From positions 1-64,000 of the IMG/VR virus record IMGVR_UViG_3300023175_000005: a stretch of DNA of 64,000 bases, one strand, 5' to 3'. Below the pieces are notes generated by a model, which was not told where the DNA came from, searched no databases, and was given only the letters and a program-made list of their open reading frames with translations. The position numbers and the translations under genes were made by a program. Below, piece by piece: positions 363 through 32,995 of the stretch. Every line of letters starts with the position of its first letter. The stretch's first letter is position 1.

Positions 363-468
363 TTGTTGGATTCTTTTTTTCATTTTTATATAAAATAAAG
401 CTTGCGTATATGTGTAGTTGTGTTATATTAGTAGTATGTTAACAAAAATGCATATAGGAGGGCAACAT

Positions 469-783
469 ATGCTAAATGGACAAGTTTGTTTAACGGAAGC
501 AGTGCGTGTAGTACTAGTAGAAGAAGACGCACAATGGAAGGCGGAGTTTGAAAAATACGGCTACAACACAGACATGTGGGCAACATATGGGGAATTTGAC
601 GAGGAGTGGCGAGAAGACGTTTTTACAATAGACGTATTTGAAGACGAAACATATGGCTTTATATGCGGCAATGCTAGTGACAGGCGTGTATACGGATTTA
701 CAGTAGACGTGTACAAAGCAGAGGAAGCAGACGGCACGTATAGTTTTTGGATAACAAACGAAGACTACGCTACAATAGGATAA
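469..783 (+). CDS. Early acidic hypothetical protein (104 aa, no Pro)
   Basis: Own promoter; GGAGGGC RBS before ATG 469. Confidence 0.8.
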   Translation: MLNGQVCLTEAVRVVLVEEDAQWKAEFEKYGYNTDMWATYGEFDEEWREDVFTIDVFEDETYGFICGNASDRRVYGFTVDVYKAEEADGTYSFWITNEDYATIG

Positions 784-876
784 AAAAAAGTTTGCGCACA
801 GTGCATTTTTTGCTTGCATTGTGCGCAACTTGTGCTATAGTGTAACTACATTAACAACTGCACATAGTGAGGGCTT

Positions 877-1098
877 ATGCAAAAAAAACTTACACGCACA
901 CAAGTAAACGCAATTACACAAACGTTCCGCAATGCAACTACACTGCAACAACAACTGCACTACTTGCAAAACATGCAGTATAAAAATGGAAGCAGAGTGT
1001 ATGACGTAACGCATTGGGAGGAAGCTATTGAAAGTATTATAGAAGAATTGTGTGAGTGCATGGATGAAAGCGTGTTGCAACACTATAAAGTTTTTTAA
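877..1098 (+). CDS. Early hypothetical protein
   Basis: Promoter 814, RBS GAGGGC 869. Confidence 0.8.
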   Translation: MQKKLTRTQVNAITQTFRNATTLQQQLHYLQNMQYKNGSRVYDVTHWEEAIESIIEELCECMDESVLQHYKVF

Positions 1099-1182
1099 GC
1101 AAACGCAAAAAAAATGGTTGCACTGTAGCACAAGTTGTGCTATAGTGTAACTATAAACTAAACTAGCATAGAGAGGGCAATT

Positions 1183-1380
1183 ATGCAAAATGTTTTCGTT
1201 TTACAATTACAGGGCACAGGCGACAGTGAAACTGCTTGGGAAAATTTTGGCGTGTTTGCTACACAACAGGATTTAGAAAAACGCTTGCGAGAAATTAACA
1301 ACGACTATTTGGATACAGACTTACAGTTTTTTAGACTGTTTGACAATGCACGTATGGAAGTTTGGGAATTAAAAAAATAA
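1183..1380 (+). CDS. Early hypothetical protein
   Basis: Promoter 1118, RBS GAGGGC 1173. Confidence 0.8.
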   Translation: MQNVFVLQLQGTGDSETAWENFGVFATQQDLEKRLREINNDYLDTDLQFFRLFDNARMEVWELKK

Positions 1381-1451
1381 AAAAACACTTGACAAGCACT
1401 GTAGTACATGCTATAGTGCTTGTATAAACTAAACTAGCATAGGAGGGTTAT

Positions 1452-1799
1452 ATGCTAAAACTTACAAACAAATATGTTGAAATTGAACGTGACGAAGACT
1501 TGCAGGAGACTTGCACTATTACTGAGTATGCTGTGGAAGGCACAGTAAAACTTGCTATGGATAGCATTTGGAATTACACAGGCAGTGACACTGTGCGTGT
1601 GGATGGTATACAGATAAGAGAAACACTGTATGAAGAAGATGGTGATACTAGCATTATGGTGAACGTGGAGCATGATGCTGCATGGAACATATACACAGAC
1701 ACGGGCTTTGAACGTGCAATTAGTGAGGCGCTTGGTATGGATATTACATTTACAGAGCAAGGCATGCAAGACGACAACTATGCAAGCATGGAGGTGTAA
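1452..1799 (+). CDS. Early acidic hypothetical protein
   Basis: Promoter 1389, RBS GGAGGGT. Confidence 0.85.
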   Translation: MLKLTNKYVEIERDEDLQETCTITEYAVEGTVKLAMDSIWNYTGSDTVRVDGIQIRETLYEEDGDTSIMVNVEHDAAWNIYTDTGFERAISEALGMDITFTEQGMQDDNYASMEV

Positions 1800-1811
1800 T
1801 AACACACAGTA

Positions 1812-1878
1812 GAGGAAGTACTGCACTGTACAGTGTAGTACTTTCGTATACCTCGTCAGGCCCCGCTGTTGGGGTCCG
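1812..1878. repeat. Two inverted repeats (AAGTACTGCACTG-TA-CAGTGTAGTACTT; GGCCCC...GGGGTCC)
   Basis: Visible hairpins after the 1452-1799 gene. Confidence 0.6.
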
Positions 1879-1972
1879 GTTACCGGAAGTATTTTTTTTA
1901 AATTAGGGGTTGACAGGTGTGTGAGACTGTGTTATAGTATGTGTATAAGTTAACAAAACGCCGGAGGGCAAG

Positions 1973-2200
1973 ATGGCTACTGACTTACGTACAACAAACG
2001 AAGACTTTACAATGACACGCTTTTGGGCCGGCTTGGAGCAGAAGGTCCAGGTTACACAGCCGCGTGGTAACACTAACTTAGGCAAGTTGCAGCAAACGGA
2101 CGAGTTCTTTACCAGTTTGCAGTTAACACGAGACGAGGCACGTGCATTAGCATTAGACTTGTTTAAGTTTGCTGAAGGACAGGAAACAGAACAATTTTAA
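1973..2200 (+). CDS. Early hypothetical protein
   Basis: Promoter 1910, RBS GGAGGGC. Confidence 0.8.
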   Translation: MATDLRTTNEDFTMTRFWAGLEQKVQVTQPRGNTNLGKLQQTDEFFTSLQLTRDEARALALDLFKFAEGQETEQF

Positions 2201-2269
2201 CATTAGGGGTTGACAGCCCCTAATTATTATAGTATAGTGTATATACAGTAACGAACAACGAGGGATACA

Positions 2270-2611
2270 ATGTTTGTAATTTACGAAAACTCATCAACAC
2301 TTATCATGGGCAAGCCAGATCGCCACGGCATTGTTCGTCCAGATTATCGTCAGTCTTATAAGACTATGGCAGCGGCTAAGGCAGCCGTCACACGCATGGC
2401 CAAACTGTGGAGAGCCAACTCACTGTCAGTGTACGAGTCACGAGACAATGATCCTGTGTTCAGGTATGCGATAGCCGAGAAGTCACTGTTCCATAACTTA
2501 ATCGAAAAGCGGCGTGTTCGAAAGAACCTGATGAACGATTCAGAGTTCGTCGAACCGGTGAACACACCTGCACACATGTCACCTGCTTGCGAAACCTATT
2601 GGAGTATGTAA
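2270..2611 (+). CDS. Early hypothetical protein (C-terminal SPACETYWSM)
   Basis: Promoter 2210, RBS GAGGGA. Confidence 0.85.
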   Translation: MFVIYENSSTLIMGKPDRHGIVRPDYRQSYKTMAAAKAAVTRMAKLWRANSLSVYESRDNDPVFRYAIAEKSLFHNLIEKRRVRKNLMNDSEFVEPVNTPAHMSPACETYWSM

Positions 2612-2612
2612 G

Positions 2613-2792
2613 ATGAAAGATGTAGCATTGAACTTGGAAAAGCTAGACAACACTCTAGACACGGTAGAAGAACTCGTTCGGGGTCTTTCACTTCGGCCGC
2701 AAGATGAAAAGAGATTGACCGATCTAATCTACGACTTTTGGATGGATGTAGAAGAGTCGGTGGAACTGGCTCCTACAGATTTTCCAAATTAG
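2613..2792 (+). CDS. Small acidic protein, 59 aa (MKDVALNLEK...), below the ORF-track cutoff
   Basis: GGAG RBS; ATG immediately after the upstream stop; translated by hand. Confidence 0.7.
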   Translation: MKDVALNLEKLDNTLDTVEELVRGLSLRPQDEKRLTDLIYDFWMDVEESVELAPTDFPN

Positions 2793-2861
2793 GGGTTGAC
2801 ACAGTGCAGCCCCTATGCTATAGTGTATGTATAGTTAGAAACGTACAAACGGAGGGCTCCA

Positions 2862-3074
2862 ATGTACAACATGTTTACTGAAGAAGGCAACACAAAAGTT
2901 GCAGCACTTGTAGCACAAGCACGCCAATTTGCAGATGTAGACGGTCCTTACAATGCCACAGAACAGGCATGGAATTGGCTGCTAAACGAGTTGGATGCAC
3001 TAGCACGTAATCCTGCTTTTGAAGAAGCAACAGATACAGCAGTGCGTGAAGCCTGCTACGACCGTTTCATATAG
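2862..3074 (+). CDS. Early hypothetical protein
   Basis: Promoter 2796, RBS GGAGGGC. Confidence 0.8.
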   Translation: MYNMFTEEGNTKVAALVAQARQFADVDGPYNATEQAWNWLLNELDALARNPAFEEATDTAVREACYDRFI

Positions 3075-3083
3075 GAGGGCAAG

Positions 3084-3383
3084 ATGGACATTTCCGATCT
3101 TCTTCAAATCATCGCAGTGGTAGCAGCACTAGATGGAGTTCAATCTGACTCTAACCACAACGGAGGTTGGCACGGCGATCATGATAACCCGCAACACGAA
3201 AACGTTGTGATCAATCCTTGGCACGGCAACTCGAGCGGTTACCACGACGGCCAGCTTTATGCACCTGCCAGCCAGTGTGCTAGTGTACGTGAACAGGTAA
3301 CCGACCTAGGCGACCGCTGGAAGATCACCACCATCGAGACCTGCCACGACACCGTTCGAGCAACAAGGTATCAGTGGAAGTAA
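3084..3383 (+). CDS. Hypothetical protein, hydrophobic N-terminus, His/Gly/Asn-rich
   Basis: RBS GGAGGGC 3074-3080. Confidence 0.75.
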   Translation: MDISDLLQIIAVVAALDGVQSDSNHNGGWHGDHDNPQHENVVINPWHGNSSGYHDGQLYAPASQCASVREQVTDLGDRWKITTIETCHDTVRATRYQWK

Positions 3384-3398
3384 TCAAGACCCCCCTGC

Positions 3399-3455
3399 TA
3401 AGTCATTGAAAACAAAGAGAAAATTATTTTGCAAAAAAATGCTAAGTGCTTGTTT
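3399..3455. promoter_or_regulatory. Pair of IHF-like sites
   Basis: TAAGTCATTGAAA 3399-3411 and TAAGTGCTTGTTT 3443-3455; same motif as 316/350. Confidence 0.5.
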
Positions 3456-3544
3456 TTAAACAAAACAAAAAGCTTTACAAGTGCGTATACTTGTGCTATT
3501 GTGTATGTATAAGTTAACTAATATGTATACAGAGGAGCATTAGT

Positions 3545-3790
3545 ATGCAAAACAAAGTATTTTTAAACGCACAAAACGCTGCAATTGTTGTAACAGTAAA
3601 CAACAAAGTTGTTGCTACAGACGTACAAACTGCAGACGCACTTGTGCAAGTGTTTTTAACACATAACATTAATGTGCTAAAAGACAATATTATGTGTAGC
3701 AGCAGCATAGACTTTGCAAGTGAAGAGGGCTTTGCTAGTGACGCAAGTGCGCATAATATAATAGACGCTGCATTTGACACATTAGCATAG
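3545..3790 (+). CDS. Early hypothetical protein
   Basis: Promoter 3474, RBS GAGGAG. Confidence 0.8.
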   Translation: MQNKVFLNAQNAAIVVTVNNKVVATDVQTADALVQVFLTHNINVLKDNIMCSSSIDFASEEGFASDASAHNIIDAAFDTLA

Positions 3791-3810
3791 CACTGCTATA
3801 CTAAAGTATT

Positions 3811-3844
3811 GCAAGCACTATACATAATAGTGCTTGCTTTTTTT
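3811..3844 (+). terminator. Intrinsic terminator overlapping the next -35
   Basis: GCAAGCACTAT-ACATA-ATAGTGCTTGC followed by a T-run. Confidence 0.7.
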
Positions 3845-3899
3845 GTTTTTTGTGTTATATTAATTGTATAACTTTAACAAGCATATAGGAGGGCTTTAT

Positions 3900-4067
3900 A
3901 TGCAAAAACAATATACACTAGAAGACTTTACTAATTTGGAGTACTACAACAAAATGCGCTGTGCAGACGGAGACGTTGTACAGTACATTGCAAAACGTAA
4001 ACGTGCTAAAACACACTGCCTAATTACTGTAAAAAATAACGTAGTACTAAAAGTGCAAAAATATTAA
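3900..4067 (+). CDS. Early basic hypothetical protein (55 aa)
   Basis: Promoter 3834, RBS GGAGGGC, ATG 3900. Confidence 0.75.
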   Translation: MQKQYTLEDFTNLEYYNKMRCADGDVVQYIAKRKRAKTHCLITVKNNVVLKVQKY

Positions 4068-4139
4068 AAAAACACTTGACAAGTGCTATAGTGTGTGCTA
4101 TAGTGCTTGTATAACGTAACAGCATATGGAGGGCTTTAT

Positions 4140-4409
4140 ATGCAAAATACTACTACTAAAACAGCACGTCAAATTGTGCGCAACATCTTAAAGCAAAACA
4201 ATGTTATGTATTCTCCGCACAGTTACACAAACAAATGTGCAAATCCTGCACTGCGTAACATTTGCTTCCTCACTAAAAACTTAACTCCTACAGTAGTGCA
4301 GCAAATTGCTTCTGCGCTTAATGTTAGCAAAGTACATGCTACCAAGCCTATGTTTTACAATGTGCATCCGGATGCACGTTATTTGCGTATAGTACATTGC
4401 GCAAAATAA
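4140..4409 (+). CDS. Early basic hypothetical protein (no Glu/Gly/Trp)
   Basis: Promoter 4076, RBS GGAGGGC, ATG 4140. Confidence 0.75.
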   Translation: MQNTTTKTARQIVRNILKQNNVMYSPHSYTNKCANPALRNICFLTKNLTPTVVQQIASALNVSKVHATKPMFYNVHPDARYLRIVHCAK

Positions 4410-4495
4410 TTTAAAAAAATGCAAATTAGGGGTTGACAAACGGCTCCTAGTTTGCTATACTATATGTATAGTTAGACGCAACGGAGGGCAATCCA

Positions 4496-4693
4496 ATGGC
4501 AGCAATCAAAATTTTTAACTCAGCATACCGTGACTCAGAAGAGCGTTGGTTGGAAATGGACGAAGTGAATGTAGTCACTATGAAGATGGACTACGACAAT
4601 GTTCCTTACATTTTGTTTGAGCACCGTGACTTTCCACTAGGCGCACTGAGCGCAACATTCACAGACGGCAACTGGTACTGTGATTTAAATTAG
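4496..4693 (+). CDS. Early hypothetical protein
   Basis: Promoter 4433, RBS GGAGGGC. Confidence 0.8.
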   Translation: MAAIKIFNSAYRDSEERWLEMDEVNVVTMKMDYDNVPYILFEHRDFPLGALSATFTDGNWYCDLN

Positions 4694-4759
4694 GGGTTGA
4701 CAGCATCTACAGAGATGCTATTATATAAACATAACGAAACAAAGCCATAGGAGGGTAAC

Positions 4760-5236
4760 ATGGCAACTCGTGCAAGAATTGGAATCGAAAACGCAGACGG
4801 TTCAATCACAACTTCATATCATCACTGGGACGGCTACCCAGCAGGCTTGGGTTTCAACCTAGTCAACAACTGGGCAGACGAAGACTTGCTTGGTGAGGCT
4901 ATCGCACTTGGTGACGCATCACATTGGGCAGACACTATTGGTTCAAAGACAGACTTTGACTGCCGTGACGATAACTATTACAAACAGAATGTCTACTACG
5001 GACGTGACCGTGGCGAGACAGGCGTAGATCCAATCATCTATGATACCTATGCTGTGTTTGAGAAATGCTTCCTACGCAACACACCTTGTGGTGAAGAGTA
5101 TGCTTATGTCTTGCGCTTGGACGGCACTTGGACACAGATTTCAGTATACCACAAAGAGGTCAAGCACGATGCGGAGGATTCAATCCGCACTGCCAAGGCT
5201 CAAATGCAACGATTGATTGATCAGGAGGCAGCATAA
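4760..5236 (+). CDS. Conserved phage early protein (MATRARIG...YHHWDGYP family)
   Basis: Recognisable Y-x-H-W-D-G-Y-P motif; promoter and RBS. Confidence 0.85.
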   Translation: MATRARIGIENADGSITTSYHHWDGYPAGLGFNLVNNWADEDLLGEAIALGDASHWADTIGSKTDFDCRDDNYYKQNVYYGRDRGETGVDPIIYDTYAVFEKCFLRNTPCGEEYAYVLRLDGTWTQISVYHKEVKHDAEDSIRTAKAQMQRLIDQEAA

Positions 5237-5742
5237 TGCCCAATTGGTGCAACAATTCATTCTCAATCACTGGTAACACTGAAAGCATCAAAGACCTTTG
5301 GGAGGCAGCACAGACTGCCGGCCCAGACGGTGGCTTTGGTTTGCTCAATGCAATCGCTCCTATCGGTGACTGGGAGTATGGTAAGGCTGTAGACACTTGG
5401 GGAACCAAGTGGGATGTCACTGACGAAGGTCTAGAGTTCATCGACAATGGTGACGGCACTGCTAGTATCTCAGGTTGGTTTGACTCAGCATGGTCTCCAC
5501 CTATTGGTGCTTACGAACAGTTGGCAGCGGACTTCGACTCGTGTATAATCGAGTGCTCCTACTACGAACCCGGTATGGACTTTGGTGGCTTTTGGTCTAG
5601 TGAGAACGGCGACGAAGAGTTTGACAATCTACAAGAGCGCTTAGAGCAGCCTACAGAAGAATGGGACGAGCGTTTCACAGCGTTCGAAGTAGAATACGAT
5701 CTACTGTCAGAAGAATGGCGTTTTGAAGAGGAGGAAGCGTGA
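5236..5742 (+). CDS. DUF1281/YubB-like ferredoxin-fold protein
   Basis: MPNWCNN, WGTKWD, FDSAWSPP, YYEPGMDFGG motifs. Confidence 0.8.
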   Translation: MPNWCNNSFSITGNTESIKDLWEAAQTAGPDGGFGLLNAIAPIGDWEYGKAVDTWGTKWDVTDEGLEFIDNGDGTASISGWFDSAWSPPIGAYEQLAADFDSCIIECSYYEPGMDFGGFWSSENGDEEFDNLQERLEQPTEEWDERFTAFEVEYDLLSEEWRFEEEEA

Positions 5743-5981
5743 AGATGTATATTGAAGGTTTAACAGAGGAGCAATGTGAAATGCTCGACAAGCTTTGGTC
5801 AATGGATACGGTAGAAGAAGTCAACGAGTTTCGCAACACTCTTCCTCGTTTCCGCCAACAGCAGATCGATACACTGATGGAATTGGTTATCCATGAGATG
5901 AAAGAAAAAGAACTGTCTCTAATGGAACGCTATCCCGAAGCAGAAGAAATGCTAGAAAGATTGAAAAAAGATTTCCTTTAG
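5739..5981 (+). CDS. Hypothetical protein
   Basis: GTG start coupled to the upstream stop; GGAGG RBS. Confidence 0.75.
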   Translation: MKMYIEGLTEEQCEMLDKLWSMDTVEEVNEFRNTLPRFRQQQIDTLMELVIHEMKEKELSLMERYPEAEEMLERLKKDFL

Positions 5982-6043
5982 GGGTTGACACTGCTGCTGT
6001 AGATGCTATAGTGTATGTATAAGTTGAAACGAGGGCAGTTACA

Positions 6044-6193
6044 ATGACAAAAGAAAACACAGGCGAAGCATTTGGTTACTTCCTAATTGTATTATTTGCA
6101 CTAGGATGGATGGATGTGCTTTGGGTATTTGGAATTGAAAACAGCAAGGACTACACATGGTGGAACTTGATACAGTATTTGGGGAATCTCTAG
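6044..6193 (+). CDS. Small membrane protein, 49 aa
   Basis: Promoter 5985, RBS GAGGGC 6031; hydrophobic ORF translated by hand. Confidence 0.7.
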   Translation: MTKENTGEAFGYFLIVLFALGWMDVLWVFGIENSKDYTWWNLIQYLGNL

Positions 6194-6195
6194 GT

Positions 6196-6348
6196 ATGAA
6201 CGATCTAATCGAAATTGTAGAAGACTTGGAATCAATCGAACTGCACGGTGTAGATAGCACTGCGTTCGAAGCAATCATTGAGAAATGGGAACAGCGTAAG
6301 ACAGAAGCCGAAGAGTTTTTGGAACGTCAATTCGAGATGGAGGTATAA
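6196..6348 (+). CDS. Small acidic protein (MNDLIEIVED...)
   Basis: ATG directly after the upstream stop. Confidence 0.65.
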   Translation: MNDLIEIVEDLESIELHGVDSTAFEAIIEKWEQRKTEAEEFLERQFEMEV

Positions 6349-6350
6349 AC

Positions 6351-6510
6351 GGAACAAGGCAATATTGAGTGGTGGTCAAACCCCTGGTTCTAAAGTTCCA
6401 AAAATGACGTAAAGAGATATATTGCCTGTGGTAGCCTGCGCCACGTTAGAAAATAAGATTGGGCTTAGAGGGTCTGTAGCCTGGCGCAGACGATAAACTT
6501 CGCCCAGGTA
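6351..6510 (+). ncRNA. Candidate structured RNA upstream of the tRNAs
   Basis: Stems AGGCAATAT/ATATTGCCT, GTGG/CCAC, TGGGC/GCCCA, GTCTG/CAGAC; no sense ORF. Confidence 0.4.
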
Positions 6511-6513
6511 CTA

Positions 6514-6600
6514 GCCTCCATGGTGGAATAGGTAGACACAAGAGACTTAAAATCTCTCGCTGATTACAGCGTCCCAGTTCGAGTCTGGGTGGAGGCACCA
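6514..6600 (+). tRNA. tRNA-Leu (TAA)
   Basis: Acceptor GCCTCCA/TGGAGGC, anticodon arm AGAGA-CTTAAAA-TCTCT, long variable arm, GTTCGAGTC T-loop, encoded CCA. Confidence 0.97.
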
Positions 6601-6613
6601 ATCTTTTTTTGAC

Positions 6614-6690
6614 GGTTGCGTAGCTCAACTGGATAGAGCAACAGACTTCTAATCTGTAGGTTGAGGGTTCGAGTCCTTCCGCAATCGCCA
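6614..6690 (+). tRNA. tRNA-Arg (TCT)
   Basis: Acceptor GGTTGCG/CGCAATC, anticodon arm ACAGA-CTTCTAA-TCTGT, GTTCGAGTC T-loop, encoded CCA. Confidence 0.97.
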
Positions 6691-6774
6691 AAAAAAGATT
6701 AAAAAAGTGGTTGACAATATATCTACTGATGCTATTGTATATGTATAGGGCAACTAAACAACGAGGGCTTAGAA

Positions 6775-7089
6775 ATGTTCGTAGTTAAGACACAGATTTT
6801 AGAAAACTATGGTGCACACAGCGAAGACGGCCGTTTTGCCTCAGGCAATGCGTACTGGAAGATGAAAGGCGGCAACGAGTATATCGTTCGTGACCTTGAT
6901 CGTCCGCAGGATGCTATGGCGTTCGTGGCTGCCAAGTTCATCGAGAACAACATCGCATTCAAGGAGTTTCCAATTGAGGTAATCACTTGGGAAGAATGGC
7001 AAGCGGAACTTAACGATCTCGACGAAGACTATCGCGAGTTCCTAGTAGAGCAGGCTATTGCTTGCTCACCCGTAGCGGAGGCAGCGTAA
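6775..7089 (+). CDS. Conserved phage early protein (TQILENYGAH...YWKMKGG)
   Basis: Promoter 6711, RBS GAGGGC. Confidence 0.85.
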   Translation: MFVVKTQILENYGAHSEDGRFASGNAYWKMKGGNEYIVRDLDRPQDAMAFVAAKFIENNIAFKEFPIEVITWEEWQAELNDLDEDYREFLVEQAIACSPVAEAA

Positions 7090-7241
7090 TGGAGCAGAGC
7101 GTAATCACAGTCACCATCGTGCTAGCCACACTGCTAGCCGTTGGACTGTTCATTAACGTAGTTCAGTTCGTATCCCGTCCGTGGGTACTGGTATTACTGT
7201 TCGGAGTGCTTGGCTGGTTTTTATTCGCCAGTACACTTTAG
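7089..7241 (+). CDS. Small two-helix membrane protein, 50 aa
   Basis: TAATG coupling, GGAGG RBS, hydrophobic; translated by hand. Confidence 0.7.
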   Translation: MEQSVITVTIVLATLLAVGLFINVVQFVSRPWVLVLLFGVLGWFLFASTL

Positions 7242-7302
7242 AGGTTGACAAATGCATTTTAGAACGTATACTGATAACAATTGTAAAACACATGAGGGCA
7301 AC

Positions 7303-8298
7303 ATGAATATAGAAATTATCGATGGCGAATACAATATCAAAGGGAAACCAACACCTATGAACGGTTTGATGTTTCCTCTAGTCGAAGAGTTTAAAATTGG
7401 GACGGGGGGCGGCTATGTCACGGTTGACGCTAGACCAGTCGCTGGCTTGCCGGATCGTAACATTAAGATCCGAGTTGCCAATGCAGACGCCTACAAGAAA
7501 GCAGGTGAGTCTACAGTCGCCCCCCAGGCAGAGACCGATGAACAGACCATTGAACGGTTGCGTGAACGGTTCCTAATGCTAGAGGACATGACCAAAGCAG
7601 TCAAGAAAGGCGATGTACGTGCAATGATCGTATCAGGACCTCCAGGTGTCGGTAAGAGTCACGGTATCGAACAAGTACTAGATCGATACAAGACCATGGA
7701 GGCACTTGGCGGTGAGAAGAAGTACGAAGTAGTCAAAGGCGCAATGAGTCCGATCGGCTTGTACTGTAAACTCTACAAGAATTCAGCCAAAGGCAACGTT
7801 ATTGTGTTCGACGACTGCGACTCAGTATTCAACGACGAACTATCGCTGAACATCCTAAAGGCTGCTCTGGATTCAAAGAAGACCAGAACAATCCATTGGA
7901 ACACTGATTCGTTCAAATTGCGCAACGAAGGTGTGCCAGATCAGTTCAAGTTCGAAGCCAGTGCGATCTTTGTTACTAACCTTAAGTTCGACAAAGCCAA
8001 GGGCAAGATCCGTGAGCACTTGCAGGCACTAGAGAGTCGCTGCCACTACATGGATTTGACTATCGATACCGATAGAGAAAAGATGCTCAGAATTCAGCAG
8101 ATCGTCGGTGACGGCATGCTAAATGATTATAAGTTTGCGAAAGAGGTAGTCGCAGATATTGTCGACTTCGTAGACATTAATAAAAATAGACTGAGAGAAC
8201 TGTCACTACGTACAGTGCTCAAAGTCGCAGACCTAGCCAAAGCTTTCCCTACTCGTTGGGAAGCAATGGCAGAGAATACTGTGATGAGACGTGGTTAG
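7303..8298 (+). CDS. AAA+ P-loop ATPase
   Basis: Walker A GPPGVGKS, Walker B VIVFDDCD, ALESRC; RBS GAGGGC gives ATG 7303. Confidence 0.9.
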   Translation: MNIEIIDGEYNIKGKPTPMNGLMFPLVEEFKIGTGGGYVTVDARPVAGLPDRNIKIRVANADAYKKAGESTVAPQAETDEQTIERLRERFLMLEDMTKAVKKGDVRAMIVSGPPGVGKSHGIEQVLDRYKTMEALGGEKKYEVVKGAMSPIGLYCKLYKNSAKGNVIVFDDCDSVFNDELSLNILKAALDSKKTRTIHWNTDSFKLRNEGVPDQFKFEASAIFVTNLKFDKAKGKIREHLQALESRCHYMDLTIDTDREKMLRIQQIVGDGMLNDYKFAKEVVADIVDFVDINKNRLRELSLRTVLKVADLAKAFPTRWEAMAENTVMRRG

Positions 8299-8390
8299 CC
8301 CTCAGCCTTTCCTCTCACAGTTGGTGTAGCAGCGTTGCCCTCACGCTCTGCACATTAGCGCTCGCAGGACCGCCCTCATCCTGCGGGCGC
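8279..8390 (+). ncRNA. Triple-hairpin RNA with GCCCUC loops (candidate anti-RBS sRNA)
   Basis: Hairpins 8279-8320, 8324-8353 and 8358-8390; GCCCTC in the loops at 8298, 8337 and 8372. Confidence 0.65.
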
Positions 8391-14201: not shown

Positions 14202-14877
14202 ATTCTTTCCTTAAAAACGGTAATATGATTCTTTTTGTATAGAATCGTTGCTGCTTAGGTGATGGATGATCGTCTCCTGGTACAGTAAACGGTGTGCCTT
14301 GAGATAATGAGAACTCATAGATACTAGGTAAAAATTTACTATGATCTAACATGTCATAAAGATGTTTACATGCAGGATGATCTACAAATTCAAATACTGC
14401 GTCTTTGTAGTTAGTAAAAAAGTATTTTATATTGTTTGCTTGCAAATACCATTGCACTCTCAACATGTGTTCCAGAGTTTCTATTTGGTGTTGTATTTCG
14501 TTGGCCTGTCTAAAATAATCTCTGCACATTTTGTTTTGCCAAAATGCATTAAGCAGTGTCCATGCACCAGTATCGTCCGGATTAAACTTATAGGGATTTG
14601 TAACCCATCCGTCTGCTGGATCACGCCAGTCTTCCATGTTATTGCCATACTTTTCTTTTCTATCAATTCCACTCCACATAACACCAACTAATATATCTCC
14701 ATAGTTGTGATTGTGTAATTTAAAAAGCAAGTCTCTTGATATAATGCCATTTCCTGCGCTAGGCAATCCACAGTGTGTAAGAGGCACATCTAGTGCTATA
14801 GATAACCACTGTGGCCATGTTCGTGGATCCTCACTTGTAGCATCACTAAAACTACAACCGCTACTAATCAATCGCAT
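14176..14877 (-). CDS. SGNH/GDSL hydrolase-like protein
   Basis: GCSFS, SAGN, DDHPS motifs. Confidence 0.7.
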   Translation of the reverse strand: MRLISSGCSFSDATSEDPRTWPQWLSIALDVPLTHCGLPSAGNGIISRDLLFKLHNHNYGDILVGVMWSGIDRKEKYGNNMEDWRDPADGWVTNPYKFNPDDTGAWTLLNAFWQNKMCRDYFRQANEIQHQIETLEHMLRVQWYLQANNIKYFFTNYKDAVFEFVDHPACKHLYDMLDHSKFLPSIYEFSLSQGTPFTVPGDDHPSPKQQRFYTKRIILPFLRKEYGIKRASN

Positions 14878-16328
14878 GTGAAAACTTTTACTCCGTAGTG
14901 CTGTTCAAATTCTTGTGCATCTTCAATTGTATTAACAATAGGTTTGCCTTTGATGTTTAGGCTTGTGTTTAAAAGTATAGGACAGCCTGTTTCTTCATAC
15001 CAACGTTCTAGCAGTTTTCTAAAGCCCACGCTTTGATCTGCAGAAACTGTCTGAACCCTACTGGTGCCGTCCCCGTGGATGATTGCAGGTAGTCCAGTAT
15101 CCTTGCAAGTTGCAGTGTATTGCATAAAGGGTCCGACATGTCCGTCGAAATAGGTAGGCGCATGTTCCTCCAGTACTGCTGGTGCAAATGGTCTAAACTT
15201 CTGTCTTCGTTTGATTTCGTTAACTCTGTCTTTGATGTCTGTACCTCTTGGATCTGCGAGTAGACTTCTGTGTCCAAAGGCTCTAGGGCCAAACTCGGCC
15301 CTGCCATTAGCCACACCAACAATACCAGTAGTAAGTAATTCTTGTAGTGCTTTTTCAACAGGATATTCTCCTTCAATATTATACCCTGTGTACACATGCT
15401 TCAGGGGCATAAATTCTTTTTTGTGTGCAAGTACACACCCAACGCTAGACCCTGCATCACCTGGATTAGGCATTATCCATACGTTGTTAAAAAAGTCATG
15501 GGTAATGTGATTGGCTGAGCAATTTAATGCACACCCTCCCATTAATACAAGATTTTTGCTATCAACTAGGTTGCTGGCTACATCTAATACGCCTTTAAAT
15601 ATCTGCTCATATGCTTTCTGGGTAGCAGCAGCAATGTCAAACATGTCTTGTTCACTAGTAAGATCAGGACGCCACCATAGGCATCCTCTGTGTAAATTTT
15701 GTTTAAAACTTACAGGGTCACCTTTTAAATCAATAAAGTCTTCAACAATATCCTTTAACAATCGATTAGGGTCGCCATAAGCAGCCATACCCATAAGAAT
15801 ATATTCATCTTCTTGAGGCTTTAATCCTAGTCTTTGTGTGAGTGCCGAGTACCATAATCCAACGGAGTTAGGGTACGATCTAGAATAGACCTTTGTGAGT
15901 TTTGTTTCATTTGCTTCCCAGATTGTGAGTGTGTCAAATTCTCCAATACTGTCGATACTAACAACACAGGCTTCTGTAAAAGGACTAGTATAATAACCGG
16001 CAGCAGCATGGGAAAGATGATGATCAGTATACCTAATAGGAACAGATATCCCATAAGATCTAAGATAACGTTTAATATTGTTTTCCCTAAATTTGATCCC
16101 TTGCCCTGCTCGAAACTGTCTAAGAGTTTTGACAAGGGGTCTTTCATACCAAATAACTTCATCTGGTTCTCCCCAACGTTTTGCATACTCTATTAATTTA
16201 TCATTTAAATGCGCATCGTTTTTTACACCACTAAAGCGTTCGCTGTGGCTTGCAAACTCTAATCCGTCATCTGTAAATACTGCTAATGCAGCATCATGGC
16301 TGTTAGCACTTATACCCCATGTAATCAT
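14868..16328 (-). CDS. O-carbamoyltransferase (NodU/CmcH/TobZ family)
   Basis: HDAALA, HHLSHAA, EYILMGMAAYG, GGCALNC, EFGPRAFGHRS, LLNTSLN. Confidence 0.95.
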   Translation of the reverse strand: MITWGISANSHDAALAVFTDDGLEFASHSERFSGVKNDAHLNDKLIEYAKRWGEPDEVIWYERPLVKTLRQFRAGQGIKFRENNIKRYLRSYGISVPIRYTDHHLSHAAAGYYTSPFTEACVVSIDSIGEFDTLTIWEANETKLTKVYSRSYPNSVGLWYSALTQRLGLKPQEDEYILMGMAAYGDPNRLLKDIVEDFIDLKGDPVSFKQNLHRGCLWWRPDLTSEQDMFDIAAATQKAYEQIFKGVLDVASNLVDSKNLVLMGGCALNCSANHITHDFFNNVWIMPNPGDAGSSVGCVLAHKKEFMPLKHVYTGYNIEGEYPVEKALQELLTTGIVGVANGRAEFGPRAFGHRSLLADPRGTDIKDRVNEIKRRQKFRPFAPAVLEEHAPTYFDGHVGPFMQYTATCKDTGLPAIIHGDGTSRVQTVSADQSVGFRKLLERWYEETGCPILLNTSLNIKGKPIVNTIEDAQEFEQHYGVKVFTCD

Positions 16329-21056: not shown

Positions 21057-21501
21057 GTTCTTTAGCCAATTCTTTGAGTTCTTTTTTTGTAGATATTCTA
21101 GCAAGTAATTCTACCTCGTCCATCTTCATTTCAGGATATATTTGCGATAGCATTTTTACTGCCTTGCTACTATCATCCTTTTTCTTTTTCAATCCAATCC
21201 AAGGATGAAATTCTTTTTTTCCTGTTTTACCTGCGACACATAAAAGCTGCCATTGCAGTTTAATATGGTTAGTACCGCCTAGCACATTCCAATTTTTGTT
21301 ATAGTATTCATTAACTTTGAAAACTGCTAATGCTTGCTTTTCATAACTGCCTTTGACACTGCTTATATAACGATTAAGATTCCACAAGTCAAGTTTAATA
21401 TCTTTCTTACCATCGTCGCCGGCAGCATCATAAAGTTCTTTAATTCCCATATCAATAGCAGGAATTAACTCCTTAAATAAATCTAGTTCTTTGTTTGCCA
21501 A
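21034..21501 (-). CDS. Probable clamp loader small subunit (gp62-like)
   Basis: NRYIS...VNEY...LQWQLL...HPWI pattern, size, replication context. Confidence 0.55.
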   Translation of the reverse strand: MANKELDLFKELIPAIDMGIKELYDAAGDDGKKDIKLDLWNLNRYISSVKGSYEKQALAVFKVNEYYNKNWNVLGGTNHIKLQWQLLCVAGKTGKKEFHPWIGLKKKKDDSSKAVKMLSQIYPEMKMDEVELLARISTKKELKELAKEHGVEYKP

Positions 21502-22157
21502 AGTTCAACATCCTCAGGTGAGTTTATCTCTACACCATTAAATTGTACACTAGAACAATGGATTTGCCAACCATTTTTTAACCAACGTAATTGTTCAAGA
21601 CCCTCTAGTTCTTCTTCTATAGGAACATCTAATGTTGGATATTGTTCTAATGCTTCTCTTGTATATCCATATATTCCTATATGCCAATCGCCATATCCAG
21701 TTGTTCCTCTGCCAAACCATAATGCACGATCACCAGTTCTAATAAGTTTGACACTATTAGGATCGTTTTTCATTTCATCTGGCATTTCTGTATAAGCAGT
21801 TACTACATTATAATTTTCTAATTGTTGTTTTACAGATAATATTATATCCTCTGTAATATCGGGCATATCACCTTGTACATTTATAAAATGTGTGTAGTCT
21901 TTTAATTTTTCTTGTCTTAAAGATATACCGCATCTTTCAGTTCCATTCATTGCATCATCAGTGTAAATTACGTTAGCATAGGGAATTTGGTGTGCAACTT
22001 TTCTACTATCTGTTATAACATATGTATCAATACCTGTTGCAGTACACTTGTTGTAAACTCTATTTACTAGCGGCACACCATTTAACATTGCAAGTGGTTT
22101 GTTTGGAAATCGTGTGCTGCCTATTCTAGCGGGTATAAGAATAGCGTACGATGTCAT
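21483..22157 (-). CDS. kdsB: 3-deoxy-manno-octulosonate cytidylyltransferase
   Basis: IPARIGSTRFPNKPL, NGTER, NVQGD, HIGIYGY, LEQLRWL. Confidence 0.95.
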   Translation of the reverse strand: MTSYAILIPARIGSTRFPNKPLAMLNGVPLVNRVYNKCTATGIDTYVITDSRKVAHQIPYANVIYTDDAMNGTERCGISLRQEKLKDYTHFINVQGDMPDITEDIILSVKQQLENYNVVTAYTEMPDEMKNDPNSVKLIRTGDRALWFGRGTTGYGDWHIGIYGYTREALEQYPTLDVPIEEELEGLEQLRWLKNGWQIHCSSVQFNGVEINSPEDVELWQTKN

Positions 22158-22890
22158 ATACCACCTCCTCAAAATCATCTAGTCGAAGCATATTCGGACC
22201 GTCGCTTGGTGCGTTATCAGGCAGTTTGTGAACTTCGAGGAAGAAATTTGATATCCCGAGAGCAGCCCCGCTACGACTGAAGCCAGGCACAAGATCACGA
22301 TTGCCGCCACTGCTAGTACCCTGTCCTCCGGGTTTTTGGGCAGCGTGAGTACAATCCAACACGATAGGAACAGGAAGATTGTTGAGCATCCAATCAAGGC
22401 CGCTGTAATCAACAACAAGGGTGTTATATCCAAAACTTGTTCCTCTTTCTGTGATCCAAACTTCTTTTGCTTCCGCACACTTACTTAGTATTCCTTTGAC
22501 ATCCCAAGGCGCTAAAAACTGTCCTTTTTTAATATTTACAATGCAATCTGTTGCACATGCTGCTTGAATTAAATCTGTTTGACGACATAAGAATGCAGGA
22601 ATTTGTAAGACATCTACAATGTGTGTCAAGTATTGTATTTGATCTCTTTCATGTATATCTGTTACAATTTTTAGATTAGGAATTTCTTCTTTCATATCAA
22701 GAAAATCTCTAACTGTATCATGTAAGCCTCTGCCTCGCTTACCATCTACACTTGTGCGATTTGCTTTATCAAAACTGGCTTTGAAATAATAATCAATACC
22801 TAGTTTATTGCATACACGTTTACATTCTTTTGCAATTTCTAAACTTTGTTCTAGTGTTTCGTGCTGACACGGACCTGCAATTATTCTCAT
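22126..22890 (-). CDS. kdsA: KDO-8-phosphate synthase
   Basis: IAGPC, KASFDKANRTS, QIPAFLCRQTDL, KKGQF, ERGTSFGY, SDGP. Confidence 0.97.
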   Translation of the reverse strand: MRIIAGPCQHETLEQSLEIAKECKRVCNKLGIDYYFKASFDKANRTSVDGKRGRGLHDTVRDFLDMKEEIPNLKIVTDIHERDQIQYLTHIVDVLQIPAFLCRQTDLIQAACATDCIVNIKKGQFLAPWDVKGILSKCAEAKEVWITERGTSFGYNTLVVDYSGLDWMLNNLPVPIVLDCTHAAQKPGGQGTSSGGNRDLVPGFSRSGAALGISNFFLEVHKLPDNAPSDGPNMLRLDDFEEVVYDIVRYSYTR

Positions 22891-30196: not shown

Positions 30197-30953
30197 CTAC
30201 CAACATCCTGTATGCTTTGCCACTCTTAAGTTCATCTGTATGGAATTGTCCGTAAGCTAAGTGACATGCCCATTTATATATCTTTTCTTCCTCTTGTATT
30301 GTAGGGTTTTCTAATAAACTTATATCTTGATCACATACAACGTCTGCTGCTGTTGGTGCTAGTGTAAAGGCAGGTACCCCATATAACACACTTTCTACTG
30401 CTGCTATACTTTGATATGTAACTAATGCATGGCAATTGTTTAAATCATCATATATTGTTTTTATGATGCGTTCCGGTCTAGATGCTTTGTCTCTAATTAC
30501 TATAGGTCGATCTGTGTATTGTTTGATTTTTTCTACTGTTTCTCTAACCCAGTTGTCTCTATCTATGCCGTAAAACTTACAAGGTTTTTCACTTGGTGTT
30601 ACTAACAATATATGTTTGCCTTTTTTAGGTTTATGTATTTCTTGCCCTAGTCTTCGCCATCTATCATCAGGTCTATCTATAATATGCTTGTGCTGTAAGT
30701 CGTTTTTTACAATTCTATGCCAAACTTTCCAACCTAATGGATTGCCTGGAGATTTATAATTTCCTATATACCCACTATCCATGTAATAAAACTGTCTACC
30801 TGTTTCCCAACATTCTTTTATTAATTTTCTTTTTGCCATAGATCTAAATATAATATCTCCCTTTGTTCCGGGTGATGTAACAATATCTAATCCAGATCCC
30901 TTTGCAAATAAATTAATAAATTGATCAGTTTTATTTTTAGAGAGACATATCAT
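30183..30953 (-). CDS. KpsC/KpsS-like GT-B protein
   Basis: YMDSGY, IVIRDK, VTYQSIAAVESVLYGVP. Confidence 0.65.
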   Translation of the reverse strand: MICLSKNKTDQFINLFAKGSGLDIVTSPGTKGDIIFRSMAKRKLIKECWETGRQFYYMDSGYIGNYKSPGNPLGWKVWHRIVKNDLQHKHIIDRPDDRWRRLGQEIHKPKKGKHILLVTPSEKPCKFYGIDRDNWVRETVEKIKQYTDRPIVIRDKASRPERIIKTIYDDLNNCHALVTYQSIAAVESVLYGVPAFTLAPTAADVVCDQDISLLENPTIQEEEKIYKWACHLAYGQFHTDELKSGKAYRMLVDEKS

Positions 30954-31620
30954 CCATCATCTCGTATAATTCGTTTTTCCATAGATCGGCAAATTCACAA
31001 TTACGATAATTTTCAAACCATGGACCGCCTTCGGTATAATGAATTAATTTTGGAACATCAATGTCATCGTAAACACCAACAAGATAATTCCAAGTATGAT
31101 CTAATTCTCCAATTTCTTCATCATTTAACCAACTAAATCTGTGTAAGTATGCTCCGTTAATTTCTGGATCATTTACTAAGTCTTGTGTAAGTGTAGCATT
31201 ACTAGGATGTGAACAGTTGAACAACATAACACTTGACCAATTTTTACGTGGATAGATAGTTTGTTTTTGCCCGTCCATCTTTGTACCTTCTTTAGGTGTG
31301 TAATCATGCTTTACACACATTACAGCATATTTGTCATCTGCTTGATCGAATAGTTCTTTAATGTCTGTTGTAAGGATCATGTCGCAATCCATAAACAGTG
31401 CCCAGCCTTTAAAATCTGTAAGTTCAGGGATTAGAAATCTTGTAAATGTAAATTCTGTACTAGCAAGTTTATCTGCCTTTCTTTTATACCAGCCCGAATC
31501 TCTTAATTCTTGCTGTTTTAGCGGGCGTACATCCGCTCCTGGCTGTTTGCTTAGTATACTATGCTTGCAAACTTGATATGCAATATCTTCTCTAGTATCA
31601 TAACCTACAAATATCTTCAT
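30937..31620 (-). CDS. GT8-like glycosyltransferase
   Basis: STEFTFTRF, FMDCD, RKNWSS, WNYLVG, HYTEGGPW. Confidence 0.85.
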   Translation of the reverse strand: MKIFVGYDTREDIAYQVCKHSILSKQPGADVRPLKQQELRDSGWYKRKADKLASTEFTFTRFLIPELTDFKGWALFMDCDMILTTDIKELFDQADDKYAVMCVKHDYTPKEGTKMDGQKQTIYPRKNWSSVMLFNCSHPSNATLTQDLVNDPEINGAYLHRFSWLNDEEIGELDHTWNYLVGVYDDIDVPKLIHYTEGGPWFENYRNCEFADLWKNELYEMMDDMSL

Positions 31621-32390
31621 TAATCTCTTCTTTCAATATCATCTTCAGTTAGTTCGTCTCCCATCCATACTTCGATAACTTTTGCAGTAATATCGCCTAC
31701 ATTTGTGGCTTTGTGCCAAGTGTTTACAGGGATATCAATACTGTCTCCTGAGTAGTATGTTTTGTTTTCTCTATCCCCATTTGGATATTCTAAACTCATC
31801 ATTATTGTACCTTGTACAATATGCCAATGCTCTGAGCGTACTAAGTGTCTTTGATCGCTAAGGCTTTTACCAACGTCAAACGCAAGTTCTTTTACTTGCC
31901 AGCCGCCGTTTTTATCTAAAATCTTATAAGTGCCCCATGCACGTTGAGTGATTGGTTTATCCCAATTACTAAGAATCCAACTACTTGAATTTTTCTTATT
32001 TGTGCCTCCTACGCCCCAAACAAATTCTACATCTTTTCGATCGCCATATGTTTTCCATTCTGGAGTATTTGTAGCACTGTCTCTATCGCCGCCGTTTGCA
32101 AATATAATTTTAGAATTTTCAGTTGTTGCCATAGTTTTAAAAATTGCACCACATGCACTGTTATCGCTGTCATCAAATGCAACAATTCTATCAACAAAAG
32201 AAAGTTCGTCTATAATTGCTGCACGTTCTTCAAACGGCATAAAAGGTCTTCCTTTTTTACGTGTTAACCATTCGTCACTATTAATTCCAACAAATAACTT
32301 ATCACCTAGTTCTTTTGCTGCTTTCATATAATCAATATGACCTGAATGTAGTGGATCAAAACCACCTGTTACTAATACAATTTTTTCCAT
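31620..32390 (-). CDS. HXGH cytidylyltransferase fused to an MPI type-II cupin
   Basis: TGGFDPLHSGH, FANGGDR, KNSSS; RAWG, LSDQRH..RSEHW. Confidence 0.88.
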   Translation of the reverse strand: MEKIVLVTGGFDPLHSGHIDYMKAAKELGDKLFVGINSDEWLTRKKGRPFMPFEERAAIIDELSFVDRIVAFDDSDNSACGAIFKTMATTENSKIIFANGGDRDSATNTPEWKTYGDRKDVEFVWGVGGTNKKNSSSWILSNWDKPITQRAWGTYKILDKNGGWQVKELAFDVGKSLSDQRHLVRSEHWHIVQGTIMMSLEYPNGDRENKTYYSGDSIDIPVNTWHKATNVGDITAKVIEVWMGDELTEDDIERRD

Positions 32391-32425
32391 ACTGTATTTA
32401 TATACGTATATAACTTAAAAAAAGT

Positions 32426-32995
32426 TTATTGGTTGTATCCTAGTATATCAAAGTCTTTGTAAAAATATTCTTTGACGATTTCTTTACTAGATTTATCATA
32501 ATCATTTTGCCATATACTTTTTTTATTACTTTTATTACTTAAAGGCAAATCTGCTTCTATATTCAAGTATCTTTTTACTGGAATTATATCTTCGTGAATG
32601 TTTTCTAAATAACATAAGAATTTTACTTTATGATTAAAAAATTCTGTTTGGGTTTTTCCCATATCACCTTGCATCCAATTAGTATTTTGGATAAACCAAT
32701 TGAATCCTTTTCTTTCATAATCTAGCCAGTACGACCATCTATTAGGTTTATGGCTCCATTTTTTTGCTATACCTACATGATAATAAAACCAACTATGAAT
32801 TCTTGCATATGGATTCCTTACAACAACAAAATGATCTTTTACAGTATATTTTTTTTCTATATCTAAAAGAGTATCATGCTTATCTCCTACATCATCGAAG
32901 GAAATATTATTTTGAATCCATCCTCTTACACTGGTGCCTCCTGCTTTAGGTATGTGTAAAAAATAAATATCTTTTTTCGGTATATATAATGCCAT
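32426..32995 (-). CDS. Sulfotransferase family 2
   Basis: FLHIPKAGGTS (PAPS loop), VRNPYARIHS. Confidence 0.85.
   Translation of the reverse strand: MALYIPKKDIYFLHIPKAGGTSVRGWIQNNISFDDVGDKHDTLLDIEKKYTVKDHFVVVRNPYARIHSWFYYHVGIAKKWSHKPNRWSYWLDYERKGFNWFIQNTNWMQGDMGKTQTEFFNHKVKFLCYLENIHEDIIPVKRYLNIEADLPLSNKSNKKSIWQNDYDKSSKEIVKEYFYKDFDILGYNQ

Follow-up and report, generated by a model that had tools for sequence, protein, structure and literature searches.

Two clusters of small genes near the start of an uncultured phage genome have lost, from their sense strand, almost every cytosine that follows a pyrimidine. We analysed positions 1–64,000 (hereafter the window) of IMGVR_UViG_3300023175_000005, a 256.6-kb uncultured viral contig, together with about a dozen related loci (labels L005–L107). 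Throughout, YC denotes a C after a pyrimidine (TC or CC), RC a C after a purine and GR either GA or GG. Each of the two clusters, island 1 (genes A to D) and island 2 (genes E and F; Table 1), is, to judge from its sequence, a set of transcription units reaching from a sigma70-type promoter to just beyond the last stop codon. The explanation which we favour, though with less than even confidence, is a purge of target sites from the sense strand, selected against a single-strand-specific, YC-directed enzyme (an RNase or a base modifier, of the host or of the phage) for which a single hit would be sufficient.

The islands belong to a series of small + strand genes at about 400–8300, each of which has a near-consensus sigma70-type promoter and a GGAGG Shine-Dalgarno sequence. 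Island 1 (381–1843, + strand, 1,463 nucleotides (nt)) contains three YC dinucleotides, namely TC at 926, CC at 927 and TC at 1196, and is flanked by YC at 380 and 1844. A first reading of the letters by a model (the original prediction) had reported just these three, at 926–928 and 1196–1197, in a stretch from 382 to 1844 where roughly 100 were expected. That count is exact, the YC-free limits are refined to 381–1843, and 5,000 shuffles of the island's own bases gave an expectation of 90.2 ± 6.8 YC with a minimum of 68. At the rate of the neighbouring + strand genes, the probability of three or fewer YC is ~1e-55. In island 2 (3404–4168, + strand) a single YC is present, the CC at 4019, and no comparable YC-free run was found elsewhere in the window on either strand.

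Other dinucleotides are still common in island 1, as originally noticed, with counts of 129 for AC, 89 for GC, 95 for GA and 69 for GG; CT and TT are common as well. The rate of RC is 0.149–0.151 per base pair (bp) in the islands as compared to 0.127–0.141 in the neighbouring early genes. Since RC is kept at a normal rate, C itself is not avoided and the loss is specific to C after a pyrimidine. Beyond YC, no other 3-mer or 4-mer was found to be strongly avoided in the islands. The loss is equal across the codon phases 1-2, 2-3 and 3-1, and it extends to the non-coding parts: promoters, leaders and spacers within the islands (703 nt) hold 0 internal YC against ~41 expected at the control spacer rate. 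The second island, the purged spacers and the sparing of C itself go beyond what had been noticed at first.

Absence of YC from the coding strand means that the encoded proteins are without proline. The four open reading frames (ORFs) of island 1 (469–783, 877–1098, 1183–1380 and 1452–1799) contain no proline codon, and all 11 of their serines are encoded by AGY, in agreement with the original prediction. The depletion survives a control for amino acid usage: when synonymous codons were resampled with the usage of the neighbouring early genes, ~91 YC were predicted for the six island ORFs, which contain 4, and resampling with late-gene usage predicted 27.6 for the four ORFs of island 1, which contain 3.

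The limits of the purge coincide with those of transcription units. Upstream, the nearest YC is 0–46 nt away from the first -35 element in 9 of 11 cases; downstream, YC resumes 16–120 nt past the last stop codon, within the terminator or the next promoter. The purge is not relaxed towards the 3' end: in the final 120 nt of 12 terminal genes only 1 YC is present, with 108 expected, so that these parts are as clean as the remainder. Terminator hairpins inside the islands are free of YC and, therefore, their stems are free of GR too. Strong sigma70-type promoters of two families are present. A single repeat family, marked by an A-rich upstream element and by a palindrome, CAAGCACT..AGTGCTTG, that surrounds the -10 element, accounts for most of the island promoters (1371–1432, 3456–3517 and 4058–4119), and early genes of normal YC content have promoters of the AAATTAGGGGTTGACA family (1899–1953, 2199–2253, 2785–2839 and 4422–4476). 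Promoter class was considered as the determinant of the purge and rejected, since the YC-free gene D of L017 is driven by a GGGG-type (AAATTAGGGGTTGACA-family) promoter. The CAAGCACT..AGTGCTTG palindrome, which brackets the -10 element of island promoters, doubles as a terminator hairpin (1389–1428, 3811–3837 and 4076–4116); it looks like an operator, and no binding protein was identified for it.

Gene D is the only widely conserved island gene. Marine metagenomes contain 327 homologues of it, and proline is absent altogether from 114 of the 120 listed. We compared the DNA of ten further D-carrying lineages (52–82% protein identity, locus GC 0.38–0.50), and in each of them the D orthologue lies within a YC-free run of 409 to ~3,900 bp, which begins at or just before the promoter and often takes in other lineage-specific small genes. 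The D orthologue itself has 0 YC in eight of these ten lineages, 1 in L107 and 4 in L019, and in the whole 3.9-kb island of L021 YC is found at two sites (4 dinucleotides). L105 is an eleventh YC-free lineage, with a purged gene E and no D at the fetched locus. Homologues of gene E are YC-free in L014, L015 and L105 and relaxed in L106. The YC-free state is thus kept in related lineages, where the original prediction had suggested that it should be looked for.

The manner in which YC is avoided was examined in a pooled set of 36 island genes from 10 lineages (3,295 codons), with neighbouring early genes as control. Proline occurs twice (0.06%) in the island genes as compared to 3.2% in the control, and serine is encoded by AGY in 143 of 143 cases against 76 AGY and 111 UCN. 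The TTC:TTT ratio is 2:132 against 84:73. ATC, GTC, GCC and CTC are never used (109, 53, 66 and 37 in the control, respectively) and ACC is used once (52 in the control), while GAC, AAC, TAC, CAC, GGC and TGC are used as freely as in the neighbouring genes. Avoidance crosses codon junctions, because codons that precede a C-starting codon end in a purine or a pyrimidine at 370:5 in island genes and at 365:318 in control genes. Among the amino acids, Thr (doubled), Asn and Gln are raised and take the place of the lost Ser and Pro; Leu and Phe, the products of C-to-T change, are not raised. This pattern of codons and amino acids argues for selection at the nucleotide level rather than for chance, hypermutation or codon bias.

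In one lineage, L106 (372–1632), the trait has been lost. The E homologue uses ATC, TTC, TCA, CTC and ACC and contains 17 YC in 234 nt, and YC is present in the spacer of the L106 promoters, which indicates that protein function does not need the purge. The nearest cultured relatives of the phage are PA5oct-like Pseudomonas phages (terminase identity 52%); no island was found in the 50-kb early region of PA5oct, where the longest YC-free run is 187 bp.

The few sites that remain are not random. In the pooled islands, 23 YC dinucleotides are left in 14.7 kb, a depletion of ~100-fold, and they fall into 13 clusters, 11 of which end in CG (24% in the background; P ~7e-6). Four of the five residual proline codons are CCG, a codon that makes up 16% of the proline codons in control genes. 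Two of the 13 clusters lie in the conserved GGCCCCGC terminator stem. The tolerated forms are thus YCG and paired YC.

A complementary purge is seen in gene G, which begins at the end of island 2. GR is the reverse complement of YC and includes GA, the dinucleotide of CmdT (see below). GR-purged copies of G are present in the window (GA and GG absent from 4133 to 4369) and at 6001–6270 of L014, 6001–6270 of L015 and 7001–7270 of L105. In the 61 closer homologues Gly is near zero, Trp is absent, Asp and Glu together number about 2, and Pro is normal. More distant G homologues, adjoining D in other lineages, have the reverse pattern, being YC-free and GR-rich. An 83-residue ORF at 2559–2810 of L021, within the 3.9-kb island, has neither YC nor GR over 252 nt and no Pro, Asp, Glu or Gly. 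In L106 both purges are relaxed, that of GR in the G homologue (11 GR) and that of YC in E, whereas in L015 gene G is only partly relaxed and E is still purged. Given this contrast, a connection between the two purges is only suggestive. The GR purge may be due to a second agent or to the same agent on the other strand.

Other roles for the G message were considered and rejected. As an antisense sponge for the island leaders, it gives duplex z-scores of only -0.3 to -2.2 relative to codon-shuffled G, with no leader specificity. As an accessible decoy, a 'super-rut' (rut, Rho utilization site), it has an ordinary YC density (6–17 per 270 nt across homologues) and an mRNA that is more structured than resampled ones. 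No antisense promoter that might explain the GR-free state was evident or conserved 3' of G. The protein G model has a ferredoxin-like alpha/beta fold with a predicted local distance difference test score (pLDDT) of 94.5, and neither a sequence match nor a significant fold match was found for it in the PDB.

How could such a pattern have arisen? In the target-site purge that we favour, the islands would be transcription units for small early proteins, expressed from host-type (sigma70-like) promoters, from whose sense strand purifying selection strips each C after a pyrimidine. No 5'-YC-3' step would in this way be left in the transcript, or in the non-template DNA strand, which has the same sequence and is displaced in transcription, and all targets of a single-strand-specific factor acting at individual YC sites would be removed; a single hit, by cutting or by modifying a base, would be enough to inactivate the message. 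The agent might be an endoribonuclease, a cytosine deaminase or an ADP-ribosyltransferase that is specific for YC (probably YCH). It could come from the host, as a defence, or from the phage, as a weapon of host shutoff, and the purged genes would be those that need to be expressed while it is active.

Sense-strand specificity, transcription-unit extent and tolerance of paired YC point to a reader of single-stranded nucleic acid, and a single-hit enzyme would explain the completeness of the purge, its uniformity up to the stop codon, the bias of the residual sites and the lineage-specific loss. As would be expected of target-site avoidance in mRNA, the motif is absent from the sense strand in all phases and in the untranslated parts, is kept out by selection across divergent orthologues (eleven lineages) and is dispensable for the protein. 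CmdT modifies the A in GA of single-stranded RNA (10.1101/2024.02.24.581662), DarT2 modifies the T in TNTC of single-stranded DNA (PMC11543638) and ScARP ADP-ribosylates cytidine in single-stranded DNA and RNA (PMC12945103); these three enzymes are precedents in principle for agents that read a short motif on single strands.

Several points weigh against this explanation. No YC-specific RNase, deaminase or transferase was found in the phage-defence and host-shutoff literature searched. The trait is nearly universal in the phage clade, unlike defence systems, whose distribution is patchy. No more than about six genes per genome are protected, and these would have to neutralise or outlast the agent, but the purged genes offer no functional clue (no Pfam, PHROG, PDB or BFVD match). 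Gene G has the same type of promoter as the islands and yet its YC content is normal. The early timing is deduced from promoter type and position, and the sequence does not separate action on RNA from action on the displaced DNA strand. With slightly less confidence than in the purge of target sites as such, it is possible that we see here the genomic shadow of an undescribed effector class that reads one dinucleotide on single strands, YC in the islands and GR in the neighbouring family. Its members might be a widespread marine bacterial defence or a phage-borne host-shutoff enzyme, and the answer of the phage clade would be to write its first-responder genes in a reduced sequence alphabet.

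An alternative with a known agent is evasion of Rho, which we consider unlikely but by no means negligible. The islands would then be rut-less transcripts, since a YC-free message with more G than C cannot load Rho, and the first phage messages would escape Rho-dependent termination and the silencing of foreign DNA without a trans-acting antiterminator. The primary RNA-binding site (PBS) cleft of Rho holds the 5'-YC of single-stranded RNA, as described with reference to Bogden 1999 and Skordalakes & Berger 2003 (PMC12360218), and the match of this dinucleotide (U or C first, C second) to that avoided in the islands is exact. Rho is the only known universal bacterial factor with YC specificity, and its near universality would explain conservation across the clade. 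It silences foreign DNA, and phages have to counter it (PMC11718236); in the case of T4, Rho added in vitro limits transcription to immediate-early RNA (PMC2988021). The composition of the islands is also consistent with this alternative, as their mean C/G is 0.72–0.88 and they contain no rut-like 78-nt windows against 23–26 in the neighbouring genes, and the need of Rho for single strands agrees with the tolerance of YC in a terminator hairpin.

Several points, however, speak against Rho as the only driver. It binds multivalently over 60–90 nt, so that a thinning of YC would be enough, and a 100-fold purge which costs all Pro and UCN Ser goes far beyond what a loss of avidity calls for. Loading in the last 120 nt before the terminator would be harmless, yet the relaxation predicted for this part is not seen. 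Coupled translation ought to shield the genes in any case, since they are short and have strong GGAGG Shine-Dalgarno sequences. The phage has other early genes of normal YC content, the early region of PA5oct has no islands, and L106 has dispensed with the purge. Evasion of Rho predicts neither the YCG bias of the residual sites nor a GR-purged gene family, and it assumes that Rho is present in the host.

Much less probable is avoidance at the level of double-stranded DNA. Here the sites avoided would be restriction, methylation or modification motifs (GATC, GANTC, CCWGG, GGCC, CCGG, TCGA and many asymmetric sites) or, in a variant, the template strand would be kept free of a GR-context base modification made by the phage. 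The original prediction had proposed a shield of this kind, protecting first-expressed genes from many restriction systems at once. GATC, GGCC, CCGG and TCGA are indeed absent from both islands and occur 5–7 times each in the stretch between them, and the number of distinct catalogued sites present is down by ~30%. Strand-biased site avoidance has a precedent in T7 and EcoP15I, and the sugar and carbamoyl-transfer genes of the phage could in principle serve DNA modification. However, no more than 4 of 16 palindromic 4-mers and 28 of 64 palindromic 6-mers are excluded by the loss of YC, and taken together palindromes have a higher density in the islands than in the flanks (71–89 against 40–54 per kb for 4-mers, 18–31 against 8–15 per kb for 6-mers). 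When 618 catalogued recognition sequences were counted, as many as 244 were still present in island 1, compared with 330–361 in control stretches of about the same length. The two strands are constrained unequally, with 3 YC against 164 GR (GA 95, GG 69) on the + strand of island 1, and the constraint tracks transcription units that make up ~2 kb of a 257-kb genome, so that the phage would still be killed by cleavage elsewhere. The scanned parts of the window, outside which most of the genome lies, gave no gene for a DNA methyltransferase or for base modification. Since a nuclease of double-stranded DNA would not give a constraint that is asymmetric between strands and bound to transcription units, the restriction shield fails. 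What is left of that proposal is protection encoded in the sequence itself, for genes that are presumably among the first expressed.

Selection on translation or RNA structure is less probable again. Avoidance of YC might keep the message unstructured, keep the Shine-Dalgarno sequence from pairing with CCUCC-like segments or avoid slow Pro and Ser codons; every Watson-Crick complement of the Shine-Dalgarno core does contain YC, and the Shine-Dalgarno sequences of these genes are very strong. However, the mRNA folding energy (minimum free energy, MFE) of the real genes differs from that of synonymously resampled ones by z-scores of -2.1 to +2.1 with no consistent direction, the purge takes in codon junctions, spacers and promoter regions, and the neighbouring early genes share the Shine-Dalgarno sites and yet are normal in YC. 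Least credible is a mutational footprint, in which a YC-preferring (APOBEC-like) deaminase or transcription-associated deamination eroded YC to YT with no selection: the TC/CC context and the non-template strand are those expected of such deaminases, and some animal DNA viruses have TC-depleted genomes, but the products are not enriched (TT 113 against 96 expected, CT 59 against 57), Thr, Asn and Gln are raised instead of Leu and Phe, the state is stable over orthologues of 52–82% identity whose proteins are intact (D and G models confident, pLDDT ~94), the 370:5 arrangement of codon pairs requires selection, and the island boundaries are sharp. A YC-specific deaminase or lesion, which the original prediction had kept as a second option, is thus very improbable as the source of such a footprint and stays within the favoured class of enzymes as a selective agent.

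Loss of a motif that is read by a host factor is a known principle, with restriction sites, toxin-free messages and CpG/TC depletion as examples. The islands resemble messages free of MazF or CmdT targets, in which the sense strand is without a short motif of single-stranded RNA, one hit inactivates and immunity is by sequence; ACA-less mRNAs withstand MazF. Unlike those cases, the islands avoid a degenerate class (TC and CC), have no known cognate enzyme, are natural, span promoters and spacers, and cost an amino acid (Pro). CmdT demonstrates that a dinucleotide alone suffices as recognition element, and its authors considered phage escape by site loss implausible (10.1101/2024.02.24.581662). 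Comparison with rut sites and antitermination is also apt, as Rho reads 5'-YC on single-stranded RNA and phages using the host RNA polymerase must cope with it. Lambda N and Q, P4 Psu and the T4 sequence of immediate-early and delayed-early transcription represent solutions by trans-acting proteins or RNA elements, whereas in the islands the ligand is removed from the transcript, with a completeness and a reach to the 3' end that exceed the need of Rho evasion.

In animal viruses, APOBEC3 pressure shapes the TC content. CpG depletion in these viruses is shaped by ZAP (PMC10191365). A host factor reading a dinucleotide thus shapes viral sequence there, as is proposed for the islands, but the depletion in animal viruses is partial and genome-wide, while that in the islands is near-total, strand-specific and restricted to a few transcription units of a bacteriophage. 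Restriction-site avoidance guards incoming phage DNA, first-expressed genes above all, as in the first-step-transfer DNA of T5 and the early region of T7; the islands differ in that their palindromes are undepleted and that the constraint has a single-stranded character.

Neither a YC purge nor an anti-phage enzyme specific for YC was found in the literature searched. What is new is the combination of a degenerate dinucleotide class, near-total loss, specificity for strand and transcription unit, a cost to the proteome, deep conservation and an adjoining mirror-image purge, and there is a substantial chance that this pattern points to an undescribed effector class. Recognition of two bases has been thought inescapable for phages because the sites are everywhere, and the islands show that removal from chosen transcripts is possible. 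The cost of being proline-free is borne, and the state held across deep divergence, in an abundant marine phage clade. The island genes are marked as being under an exceptional pressure for expression, which makes them candidate counter-defence or takeover factors. The islands also predict a concrete activity that can be searched for biochemically, directed to YC on single strands. If the agent is Rho, they would be the first antitermination by deletion of the ligand from the message. In either case, strand-specific dinucleotide-free runs provide a cheap new search key for metagenomes, and if the effector class is real, scanning for such transcription units would be a general route to effectors and counter-defence genes.

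Table 1. Features of the two YC-free islands and of the adjoining gene G (window coordinates).
Feature	Description	Positions	Strand	Basis
Island 1	four small genes, each with its own promoter, and spacers	381..1843	+	YC count
First island promoter	TTGCGT, 16-nt spacer, TATATT; last upstream YC (380) 21 nt before -35	402..429	+	
Gene A	104 residues, acidic (24 D/E), 0 Pro, 0 YC; homologue in the L014 island	469..783	+	
Hairpin 3' of gene A	terminator-like, with T-run, without YC	793..812	+	
Gene B promoter	TTGCAT, 16-nt spacer, TATAGT	814..841	+	
Gene B	73 residues, 0 Pro; residual TTC-CGC junction (TCCG, 926-929)	877..1098	+	
Gene C promoter	TTGCAC, 17-nt spacer, TATAGT	1118..1146	+	
Gene C	65 residues, 0 Pro; one residual TTC-G (1196); homologue in the L014 island	1183..1380	+	
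Gene D promoter	TTGACA, 17-nt spacer, TATAGT, with TG; palindrome CAAGCACT..AGTGCTTG on its flanks	1389..1417	+	
Gene D	115 residues, acidic, 0 Pro, 0 YC; conserved core gene of the islands	1452..1799	+	
Island 1 end	palindrome 1816-1843, then GC hairpin 1875-1887 with T-run; YC returns 45 nt past the D stop	1816..1898	+	
Island 2	genes E and F, their promoters and the first 29 nt of gene G	3404..4168	+	YC count
Gene E promoter	TTTACA, 17-nt spacer, TATTGT, with TG	3474..3502	+	
Gene E	81 residues, 0 Pro, Ser 6/6 AGY, 0 YC	3545..3790	+	
Hairpin 3' of gene E	intrinsic-terminator-like (GCAAGCACTATA..TAGTGCTTGC), with T-run; stem without YC and GR	3811..3847	+	
Gene F promoter	TTGCTT, 16-nt spacer, TATATT; similar to first island promoter	3834..3861	+	
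Gene F	55 residues, 0 Pro, 1 YC; homologue in the L023 island	3900..4067	+	
Gene G promoter	island type, 84% identical to the gene D promoter region	4076..4104	+	
Gene G	89 residues, basic, normal YC (17), GA/GG absent 4133-4369	4140..4409	+	

None of the proteins A to G has a PHROG or Pfam match. The protein D model (pLDDT 94.2) is a beta-rich domain with one helix, its invariant residues include D37, W40, H74, W78, Y81, D83 and E87, and its fold has no significant match in the PDB or in BFVD, a database of predicted viral structures. Proteins A, C and D are acidic. DNA mimics of the Ocr/ArdA type were considered and rejected, as no island protein has a PHROG or Pfam match and D has no fold match in the PDB or BFVD.

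The phage is a jumbo myovirus, as its window encodes a tail sheath, a T4-type large terminase and a DnaB-like helicase. A search of 50,697 deposited phage records gave no match, either to the nucleotide sequence or to the gene D protein. The phage GDP-mannose dehydratase, examined as a clue to the host, has its best match at 60%, to assorted phyla, and is uninformative in this respect. An Rfam scan gave only two tRNAs above threshold; tRNA-Leu(TAA) and tRNA-Arg(TCT) close the early region (6514–6690).

Just 5' of island 1 (130–340; also at 3740–4090 of L014), ACTACTA-type repeats form a C-rich, G-poor stretch, which is GR-free at 210–334 and strongly rut-like in a crude scan of C/G and YC. Near the early regions of related loci, L023 encodes a 2OG-Fe(II) oxygenase, a radical-SAM protein and a nitroreductase-like protein (807–3361), and L008 carries a gene of the dCMP-deaminase family (4149–4622). 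Elsewhere in the window, a nucleotide-sugar gene set is located on the - strand (14868–16328, 21483–22890, 30937–32995 and 34301–35605) and the + strand (36440–37414), with a carbamoyltransferase, KdsA-like and KdsB-like proteins, a family-8 glycosyltransferase, a sulfotransferase, a cytidylyltransferase fused to an RraA-like domain and GDP-mannose 4,6-dehydratase among its members. The structural module includes a subtilase (47032–48591), and the tail-sheath protein is unusually long, with 1,109 residues (52772–56101).

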